This document shows positions 47,848-48,846 of a stretch of DNA of 64,000 nt, piece after piece. Positions within the stretch are counted from its first letter, which is position 1; each line of letters starts with the position of its first letter. Under the pieces are notes generated by a model that made no database searches, had not been told where the DNA came from, and worked only from the letters and a program-made list of their open reading frames with translations. Both the position numbers and the translations under genes were made by a program. Location: the IMG/VR virus record IMGVR_UViG_3300029922_000001, positions 124,001-188,000 of that record; one strand, 5' to 3'.

Positions 47848-47877
47848 TTGACAAACTTCAGAGATTGTGGATATAAT
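47848..47877 (+). promoter_or_regulatory. Consensus sigma70 promoter of the RNA array
   Basis: TTGACA (47848-47853), 18-nt spacer, TATAAT (47872-47877). Confidence 0.8.
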
Positions 47878-48046: not shown

Positions 48047-48117
48047 GGGGATGTAGCTCGACGGTCGAGTTAGAGCCTTTTAAGCTCAAGGCGTGGGTTC
48101 GATTCCCTCCGTCCTCA
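48047..48117 (+). tRNA. tRNA-Lys(TTT), atypical D arm
   Basis: Acceptor GGGGATG/CGTCCTC; anticodon arm GAGC-CTTTTAA-GCTC; T loop TTCGATT; no encoded CCA. Confidence 0.85.
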
Positions 48118-48127
48118 CCGAGAATAT

Positions 48128-48198
48128 GGGAAGTTAGTTCAATGGTAGAGCGGGAGAATCTAAATCTCCTAATGAGGGTTCGATTCCCTCACTTCCCA
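48128..48198 (+). tRNA. Amber suppressor-type tRNA (anticodon CTA)
   Basis: Acceptor GGGAAGT/ACTTCCC; D arm GTTC/GAGC; anticodon arm GGAGA-ATCTAAA-TCTCC; T arm GAGGG-TTCGATT-CCCTC. Confidence 0.88.
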
Positions 48199-48211
48199 CC
48201 GAGATAAATAT

Positions 48212-48284
48212 GGGAATAAAGCATAAAGGGTGATGCAGTTGGCTCTTAACCTTCAGAACCTGGGCTCGACCCCCGGTGTTCCCA
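48212..48284 (+). tRNA. Degenerate tRNA-Lys(CTT)
   Basis: Acceptor GGGAATA/TGTTCCC; loop CTCTTAA; anticodon stem with two T-T mismatches, A8 and T loop CTCGACC. Confidence 0.65.
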
Positions 48285-48294
48285 CGAGAAATAT

Positions 48295-48367
48295 GGGGAT
48301 ATAACTCAATTGGTAGAGTGGCAGACTCTTAATCTGTAAGTTTGGGGTTCAAGTCCCCATGTCCCTA
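48295..48367 (+). tRNA. tRNA-Lys(CTT)
   Basis: GGGGATA/TGTCCCT; ACTC/GAGT; GCAGA-CTCTTAA-TCTGT; TGGGG-TTCAAGT-CCCCA. Confidence 0.92.
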
Positions 48368-48376
48368 CGAGAGCAA

Positions 48377-48701
48377 TTTGAATTTTGGGAAGTTGGCTTA
48401 GAAACAGCTATCTTATAATGAGTGTCAAGTGGAATGCATCAGGACGAATATAGGTATGAGAAATCTGAATAATCTATCGTGCGCGGTAGATTAATACTGA
48501 AATTCGGTTGGTACTGATGTCGTGTCTCAGCTATCCCAGCATGAGGACGTAGAACCACAGGGGAAGGACAAGTGCAGTATTAATAATATGTTTGGTAGGC
48601 GAAGCTACCGAACTAAGTAGAGGAAGGTAAGGGATAGGATATTCTACAATGTTATTAATGACCCTTAGAGACTTTGGCGTAGTAGCACACCAAAATTCAA
48701 A
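48377..48701 (+). ncRNA. ~325-nt structured RNA containing a split mimic of 23S rRNA H43/H44 (GTPase-associated centre)
   Basis: Perfect 12-bp terminal helix TTTGAATTTTGG/CCAAAATTCAAA. 48387-48423 joined to 48677-48691 aligns without gaps to 23S nt 1054-1105 (reference recalled from memory). Several internal helices; same CGAGA trailer as the tRNAs. Confidence 0.8.
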
Positions 48702-48712
48702 ACGAGATGTAA

Positions 48713-48808
48713 GGGGGTATAGCTTAGTGGTTAAAGCTGGAGACTTTTGGAGTATTTCATGGAATATTGCAAAATCTCTAGACTAGGGTTCGATTCCCTG
48801 TGCCCCTA
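48713..48808 (+). tRNA. tRNA-Lys(TTT)-like with a 24-nt insert in the anticodon loop
   Basis: GGGGGTA/TGCCCCT; GCTT/AAGC; GGAGA-CTTTT-[48749-48772]-AA-TCTCT; TAGGG-TTCGATT-CCCTG. Confidence 0.75.
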
Positions 48809-48846
48809 CCGAGATTAAGACAAGTTTTATATGTATAAACACAAGT

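Follow-up and report, generated by a model that had tools for sequence, protein, structure and literature searches.

What is a structured insert of 253 nucleotides (nt) doing in the middle of a helix that otherwise copies ribosomal RNA (rRNA)? The question is raised by a small RNA gene in a virus record from peat (441 kb; IMG/VR record IMGVR_UViG_3300029922_000001), of which positions 124,001 to 188,000, a stretch of 64,000 nt, form the window analysed here. The gene, ~325 nt in length, lies on the plus strand of the window at 48377-48701, within a tRNA array and between tRNA-Lys(CUU) and tRNA-Gln. It specifies a mimic of the GTPase-associated centre (GAC) of 23S rRNA, and the insert occupies positions 48424-48676 of the same strand. 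A preliminary description of the window had proposed that the insert is either a scaffold domain projecting from helix 44 (H44) or a self-splicing element that switches the mimic on. The comparison of this RNA with its relatives in other phages, together with RNA contigs from peat, makes it likely that the insert stays in place permanently and folds independently, as a scaffold domain of a stable RNA encoded by the phage that copies the 23S GAC (H42-H44).

The rRNA-like part of the molecule is unambiguous. Positions 48389-48423 (plus strand) align base for base with positions 1056-1090 of Escherichia coli 23S rRNA, and positions 48677-48689 with 1091-1103 (E. coli rrlH, by direct alignment and nhmmer). 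The 5' half includes the H43 hairpin (48394-48410) and A48400, the equivalent of A1067, while the 3' half includes A48681, the equivalent of A1095, and contributes the pairs at the tip of H44, G48677-C48686 and C48678-G48685, for which C-G covaries with U-A in the family. The H43 and H44 pairs and the joining strands of the GAC are all kept. A profile of the phage family matched 23S rRNA at positions 1051-1088 (nhmmer, E=3e-12), and the profile and the alignment together identify the H44 of the preliminary description as helix 44 of 23S rRNA. The module is closed by P1, an H42-like helix of 12 bp between 48377-48388 and 48690-48701, which RNAalifold predicts with many compensatory changes. A blastn search against E. 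coli genomes returned no match, because the rRNA-like part is too short. The possibility that the gene represents a full-length large-subunit (LSU) rRNA gene or a fragment of one was considered and rejected, as only ~50 nt are rRNA-like and the gene is flanked by tRNAs and present as a single copy in the 441-kb record. The insert itself sits exactly between 23S positions 1090 and 1091 of H44, and its similarity to rRNA is confined to a 1-bit match of the GCGAAG hairpin described below to H68, which was taken as chance.

The RNA is not restricted to the peat virus. In blastn searches, both ends of the gene, with a different middle, were found in unannotated intergenic DNA of cultured phages of Serratia (phage BF), Erwinia, Cronobacter, Yersinia, Xanthomonas, Ralstonia, Acinetobacter, Pseudomonas and Aeromonas. 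Pattern scans of IMG/VR yielded 24 matches to a 3' motif and at least 120 matches to a 5' motif; the 24 viral-contig matches to the 3' motif included 16 further distinct RNAs of the window type, and 98 distinct inserts remained after de-duplication of the matches listed. All 98 are located at the same point of H44, belong to several sequence types and range in length from 27 to 364 nt. Their ends can form a closing helix of at least 3 bp in 94 cases, with a mean of 3.85 bp compared to 0.85 bp for non-cognate ends, and the linker that follows this helix is UUUG in 83 inserts, UUUA in 14 and UCUG in one. The pattern TTTAAAGAGTNNCGAG was discarded as a probe for the family, as it matched mostly coding DNA. 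Searches with Rfam 15, at gathering and at permissive thresholds, of the window and eight relatives recovered only tRNAs and left the mimic family unmatched, and no published description of a phage mimic of the GAC, the sarcin-ricin loop or rRNA was found in the literature. The RNA that bears the insert appears to be an undescribed class, and the insert matches no known RNA family.

Several individual members of the family deserve mention. A GAC mimic of ~75 nt without an insert is present on a 34.7-kb viral contig (L263:1740-1835); it has its own closing helix and an uninterrupted ...AAAGAGUGCGUAAUAGCUCAC... strand, which implies that the GAC module can stand alone and that the insert is an add-on. 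Position 1101 is U in this RNA, as in rRNA, versus A in every insert-bearing member looked at, but the extraction pattern demanded A at this position, so that the contrast is not an independent test. Another contig (L019:1-960) contains only the 3' part of a family RNA, likely a remnant, and upstream of it a tRNA is apparently split by an insertion of ~600 nt that encodes an HNH-endonuclease-like open reading frame (ORF). In a third (L026:3140-3435, minus strand), an extra insertion of ~36 nt separates GCAGCCA from the UAUAAUGAGU strand on the 3' side of helix 43, indicating a second site in the GAC module that tolerates additions.

How is the insert attached to H44? Its first three nucleotides, GUC (48424-48426), pair with GAC at 48670-48672, directly before the terminal UUUG. 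The resulting helix, P-epsilon, closes off the insert, which thereby joins H44 in a three-way junction. An RNAalifold analysis of 17 sequences found P-epsilon paired in all 17, two of its three pairs showing compensatory changes, with G-C and U-A as alternatives, and an anchored comparison of the window-type relatives revealed seven distinct complementary versions. Because its ends pair with one another, the insert leaves helix 44 as a third junction arm between 1090 and 1091. The next helix, P-alpha, is formed by GUGG (48429-48432) and CCAC (48555-48558) and shows strong covariation, with compensatory changes at three of four pairs in the RNAalifold analysis and about 10 complementary versions in the anchored comparison. 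For P-delta, RNAalifold predicts that AGGG (48559-48562) pairs with CCCU (48662-48665). Altogether, P1, H43, P-epsilon, P-alpha, P-delta and the H44 tip were predicted independently by RNAalifold, with compensatory changes in 14 of its 27 pairs. The covariation supports an arrangement in which P-epsilon, P-alpha and P-delta meet in an internal three-way junction, of which the P-delta leg is predicted. Two conserved strands accompany these helices, a purine-rich joining strand GAAGGACAAGUGCAGU at 48563-48578 and the 3' strand GACCCUUAGAGACUUUG at 48660-48676, which comprises the 3' strand of P-delta, a UAGA junction, the 3' strand of P-epsilon and the UUUG linker. It should be noted that the folding z-score of the whole RNA is only -1.87, so the real support for the structure is covariation rather than energy; the fold constrained to these helices has an energy of -81.9 kcal/mol, compared to -86.1 kcal/mol for the unconstrained minimum, a cost of ~4 kcal/mol.

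The two arms of the domain are connected by a loop-loop interaction. The P-beta hairpin (48521-48549), with the stems CGU/ACG and UCUCA/UGAGG, carries the loop L-beta (48530-48541), and its stem is kept in relatives despite sequence change. Within this loop, CUAUCCC (48531-48537) is complementary to GGGAUAG (48631-48637) in the loop of P-eta, a GUAGAG/UUCUAC hairpin at 48617-48647; it is this pair of loops for which the preliminary description had suggested a pseudoknot, and the suggestion has held up well. Twelve distinct complementary versions were found in 18 relatives, among them ACUCCCA/UGGGAGU, GUCCA/UGGAC, UUCCA/UGGAA, CCCAA/UUGGG, GUACCAC/GUGGUAC, AUAUCAC/GUGAUAU, CACCAC/GUGGUG and GUGCCAAC/GUUGGCAC. 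When Watson-Crick pairing restricted to the loops was compared between cognate and non-cognate loops, cognate loops formed a mean of 5.83 pairs versus 4.73 for non-cognate loops, and the observed total was reached in none of 20,000 permutations. An earlier search for the longest complement between the arms, in which G-U pairs were allowed, had performed no better than shuffled sequences. Judged by this covariation, the kissing loop is real and ties the arm of P-alpha and P-beta to the arm of P-delta, P-gamma and P-eta.

The retention of this architecture also bears on the possibility that the site is simply permissive. If the insert were a neutral expansion segment, with H44 tolerating arbitrary and functionless insertions, then insert lengths from 27 to >360 nt, several unrelated-looking types and the existence of one insert-less member would all be expected. 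Nevertheless, compensatory changes have preserved the window-type architecture and the kiss in phages whose hosts differ widely, and nearly all members bear an insert, so that a neutral expansion segment is very unlikely.

The second arm is built on P-gamma, in which 48579-48589 pairs with 48649-48659 over 11 bp, with 13 distinct complementary versions among 18 relatives. Inside P-gamma lie P-eta and a further hairpin, P-zeta (48590-48613), with the stem strands GTTTGGTAG (48590-48598) and CTACCGAAC (48605-48613) and a conserved GCGAAG loop (48599-48604); both recur in relatives with different stem sequences, in agreement with the P-zeta hairpin noticed earlier. All motifs that the preliminary description listed were found where it had placed them, but presence and pairing have to be distinguished for the long helix of 10 bp that it proposed between ATTAATACTG (48490-48499) and CAGTATTAAT (48575-48584): the complementarity exists, while the pairing is probably non-native or at best an alternative, as it clashes with P-gamma. 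Its 3' arm overlaps the conserved and covarying P-gamma and its 5' arm lies inside a sub-insert. One could envisage a conformational switch in which this helix competes with P-gamma and toggles the domain between two folds. A perfect 10-bp complement was reached in only 10 of 500 dinucleotide shuffles (2%), and the helix would sequester a conserved CAGU and the 5' strand of P-gamma. However, six of its ten pairs stem from the self-complementary ATTAAT, which is present three times, the partner strand in the sub-insert is found only in this RNA, and P-gamma is chosen by both the minimum-free-energy and the homology-constrained folds. A switch of this kind is highly improbable.

The sub-insert (48436-48520, 85 nt) is closed by GCAUCAG/CUGAUGU and holds a hairpin (48470-48493) as well as the 5' arm of the 10-bp helix. 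Of the other 16 aligned RNAs, 15 have nothing equivalent to it, and the remaining one (L013) has an unrelated insertion there. The complementarity of CATCAG (48437-48442) and CTGATG (48514-48519) had been noted before, as had a competing hairpin, now located to AATCTATCG (48471-48479) and CGGTAGATT (48485-48493). The former helix closes the sub-insert and the latter hairpin fills it, and both are part of the minimum-free-energy fold, which makes them plausible elements of the modelled structure.

Removal of the insert in silico generates ...AAUGAGU joined to GCGUAGUAGCAC, which can be aligned to E. coli 23S 1084-1102. As observed in the preliminary description, the insert follows a U (U48423), ends in a G (G48676), and its precise removal restores the rRNA sequence of H44. 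These features, and a length of 253 nt that would suit an intron, are what a self-splicing group I-like intron would display, which would be excised and the halves of H44 ligated, so that the GAC mimic would be active only thereafter; L1090 and L1094 are indeed real sites of group I introns in fungal LSU rDNA (PMC1299323). Nevertheless, splicing is not supported by the further features of the insert. Rather than forming the P1 helix of an intron, the 5' end of the insert is paired with its 3' end. An internal guide sequence of the form G+CUC(A/U) is absent from the window insert and from 13 of 18 relatives, and where it does occur in relatives, it is the P-alpha strand. No match to group I or group II models of Rfam was obtained in the window (E<=10) or in eight relatives (E<=1). 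The terminal nucleotide is A in 14 of the 98 unique inserts, so a terminal omega-G is not universal, and the same site is occupied by inserts of 27-49 nt, which cannot be ribozymes. The covariation-supported fold is a simple three-way junction without a P3-P9 catalytic core, and the canonical P3/P7 core that the preliminary description had failed to identify is indeed not present.

The RNA contigs point in the same direction. Contigs of this gene were recovered from five peat metatranscriptome runs, with the flanking protein genes bare, and they extend from 48377 to 48599, 48377 to 48526, 48408 to 48530, 48512 to 48662, 48419 to 48662 and 48397 to 48662. Two begin precisely at 48377, where the 5' end of the RNA is suggested to lie. 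All match the gene exactly with the exception of one (X22), which has two strain differences, G48510T, at a site in the sub-insert that the predicted fold leaves single-stranded, and G48524A, at the bulged G that separates the two stem parts of P-beta; both positions are unpaired. Apart from the piece at 48512-48662, all contigs cross the 48423/48424 junction unspliced, and joints, including the GAGT-GCGTAG junction predicted for splicing, were not seen in the five runs, the libraries being of a type that a ligated product of ~72 nt would escape. The RNA is present in RNA libraries with its insert still attached. The intron reading is thus largely refuted already and extremely improbable, and a tempting but wrong intron annotation has been removed.

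The contigs have a second property. All three that reach so far (X16, X18 and X22, from three runs) stop precisely at 48662, but DNA contigs of this phage extend beyond it. It is possible that 48662 is a discrete RNA end, generated by processing or cleavage between C48662 and C48663 inside the conserved strand GAC followed by CCUUAGAG, or that it reflects a library or assembly effect; a discrete end, if true, would add site-specific cleavage inside the scaffold. It would also fit the idea that the insert is the functional module itself, a protein-binding platform or a cleavage or processing element, with the GAC serving as a handle or partner, all the more as the conserved single strands AGGGGAAGGACAAG and CCCUUAGAG flank 48662, and CCCUUAGAG occurs also in relatives retrieved with the independent 5' pattern. 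Against this idea, Logan contigs with a depth of 2-15 are weak evidence for RNA ends, and libraries would in any case have missed the 39-nt 3' piece. In addition, the insert and those of eight relatives match no known ribozyme in Rfam, the search for self-cleaving ribozymes giving only a chance-level match to drz-agam-2-2 on the minus strand over the tRNAs, and inserts of other types, unrelated in sequence, are found at this site. Overall, this alternative is rather unlikely.

If the insert is a scaffold, what would it hold? Ten longer relatives share the junction motifs of the window type (UGCGAG..., ...CCNCAGGG... and ...CCCUUAGAGCAUUUGG), and they contain within the P-gamma domain a hairpin with the exact sarcin-ricin-loop 12-mer AGUACGAGAGGA, aligned to 23S 2653-2665 (L030, L035, L040, L046, L049, L053, L054, L073, L103 and L129; L173 carries it also). 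The stem of this hairpin covaries (UUCCA/UGGAA, UUGCA/UGCAA, GUGCA/UGCAC). The sarcin-ricin hairpin of the relatives and the GCGAAG hairpin of the window RNA both precede a UUAA-like linker, and by this analogy P-zeta would occupy the position of the sarcin-ricin hairpin. The ribosomal binding site for translational GTPases is known to consist of the GAC and the sarcin-ricin loop (see also PMC2330231). With a GAC copy throughout and sarcin-ricin-loop copies in relatives, the family looks like a mimic of the translation-factor binding site, and in the simplest reading the insert would be the scaffold by which the geometry of this site is set.

A mechanism can be proposed on this basis. The RNA would be made from the tRNA array, probably with tRNA-like processing. 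The kiss would lock the two arms into a compact, nuclease-resistant body, and this body would hold the 60-nt GAC module and present a second hairpin beside it, namely, the GCGAAG loop in the window RNA and the sarcin-ricin-loop copy at the same place in the longer relatives. The whole RNA would imitate the binding site for translation factors on the ribosome and would most likely act as a decoy or sponge for whatever normally recognises that site. Candidate partners would be L11, the L10-L12 stalk, a translational GTPase (of the EF-G, EF-Tu or RelA type), or a toxin or defence enzyme of the host that targets the GAC or the sarcin-ricin loop. Toxins by which one of these two elements is modified or cut are known, for example, Tre23 (PMC8661411) and SRLase1 (bioRxiv 2026.09.18.752725). 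More tentatively, and with some doubt on our part, the insert may form the architectural centre of an RNA class new to phages, one that reconstructs the factor-binding site in a single small molecule, in which the kiss scaffold would fix the geometry of the GAC and the second hairpin and the RNA would capture or mis-activate GTPases, stalk proteins or a toxin or defence enzyme.

Several points weigh against the interpretation as a permanent scaffold and the function proposed for it. P-delta is invariant within the subtype, so its pairing is unproven, and in predicted folds either U48423 or G48676 could close H44. The sequences were gathered by motif patterns, and the conservation of those motifs (e.g., GACCCTTAGAG) is therefore partly circular. 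RNA coverage never reaches 48663-48701: the contigs stop at 48662, and hence the intact 3' junction of the insert is not seen in RNA. The pairings in the sub-insert are predicted from the fold, and a search for related loci via the neighbouring ORF of 286 amino acids (aa) recovered no close relative of this phage. The window RNA has no copy of the sarcin-ricin loop, and none above control level was detected elsewhere in the 441-kb genome; the role of its second hairpin thus rests on positional analogy.

The genomic context is compatible with production of the RNA alongside tRNAs. The array spans 48047-48810 of the window and contains five tRNAs according to Rfam and four according to ARAGORN. 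Upstream of the array, on the plus strand, lies a putative sigma-70-type promoter (47848-47877), to which a promoter function is ascribed from its consensus match, TTGACA and TATAAT separated by 18 nt, with 12 of 12 positions. The ACGAGA spacer directly 3' of the RNA gene is the same as that after each tRNA; spacers of the (C)CGAGA type are found at 48119-48130, 48200-48211, 48284-48294, 48368-48376, 48702-48712 and 48810-48818, after every unit of the array including the GAC mimic, suggesting a common processing signal. The shared spacer and the array context together suggest a tRNA-like processing of the mimic RNA.

Some of the neighbours are unusual in themselves. The array begins with tRNA-Lys(UUU) at 48047-48119, followed by a tRNA with the anticodon CUA at 48128-48200, of the amber suppressor type (labelled Pyl by ARAGORN); ORFs nearby are long under code 11, and recoding is thus not evident there. 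A tRNA at 48212-48284 was found by Rfam only and appears to read CUU, like tRNA-Lys(CUU) at 48295-48368. The tRNA-Gln(UUG) at 48713-48810 is 98 nt long, and an insertion of ~27 nt in its anticodon loop, far too short for a group I intron, can lengthen the anticodon stem to form a long hairpin. At L150:329-445, a tRNA of comparable excess length (117 nt) adjoins another family member. The same phage genome also encodes a homologue of ribosomal protein bL12 (G000:C1:304136-304336, PF00542, E=6e-26, ORF of 131 aa). A general link between this protein and the mimic RNA was considered and rejected, as bL12 was detected in only 2 of 11 RNA-bearing phage genomes. Phage-encoded L10 or L11 was not found.

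That phages carry tRNAs of their own is well established. A stable phage-borne RNA with a copy of the GAC and, in relatives, one of the sarcin-ricin loop as well would represent a new kind of molecule for host takeover or counter-defence. The insert raises this RNA above a 60-nt fragment of rRNA, as it provides a scaffold of conserved tertiary structure whose kissing loop covaries. It lends itself well to structure determination, and loop mutants offer a direct handle on function. Abundant in viral metagenomes, the family also occurs in cultured jumbo phages amenable to genetics, for example, Serratia phage BF, Cronobacter phage GAP32, Ralstonia phage RSP15 and Acinetobacter phage ME3, in which the RNA is unannotated.

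The closest known counterpart is the 23S GAC itself (H42-H44, E. coli 1051-1108), the site of L11 and thiostrepton. The mimic shares ~50 nearly identical nucleotides with it, including A1067, A1095, the H43 loop and the tip pairs of H44, and it has a closing helix where H42 would be. Unlike the GAC, the mimic is a free-standing RNA of ~325 nt in a phage tRNA array, with a domain of 253 nt between 1090 and 1091 and an A instead of a U at position 1101. Group I introns have peripheral loop-loop contacts of the P13/P14 kind, to which the kiss of the insert can be likened. The fungal LSU introns at L1090 (PMC1299323) occupy the same position in rRNA numbering, with a U before and a G at the end, but the insert family lacks a P1 with a guide and a P3-P7 core, is retained in RNA, does not always end in G, and includes members that are far too small for a ribozyme.

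Other large or imitative RNAs invite comparison as well. GOLLD and ROOL are likewise phage-borne, ornate RNAs of several hundred nucleotides in tRNA neighbourhoods, but the mimic does not match their Rfam models, and they are not known to contain an rRNA copy. The mimic likely shares its logic, the capture of a ligand by a copied cellular RNA site in a modular combination of mimic and scaffold, with leaders of ribosomal protein mRNAs that imitate rRNA binding sites, the tRNA-like modules of bacterial Y RNA (YrlA) and phage pseudo-ToxI; in contrast to the RNA described here, whose ligands are candidates, these are not stable phage RNAs that copy the factor-binding site of the large subunit. The expansion segments and intervening sequences of rRNAs, like the insert, are domains of variable length at a fixed point of a conserved helix with a closing helix of their own. 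However, the host molecule is here a mimic and not a component of the ribosome, and the domain that it carries has a conserved tertiary structure and, in relatives, bears a second rRNA copy, the sarcin-ricin loop.
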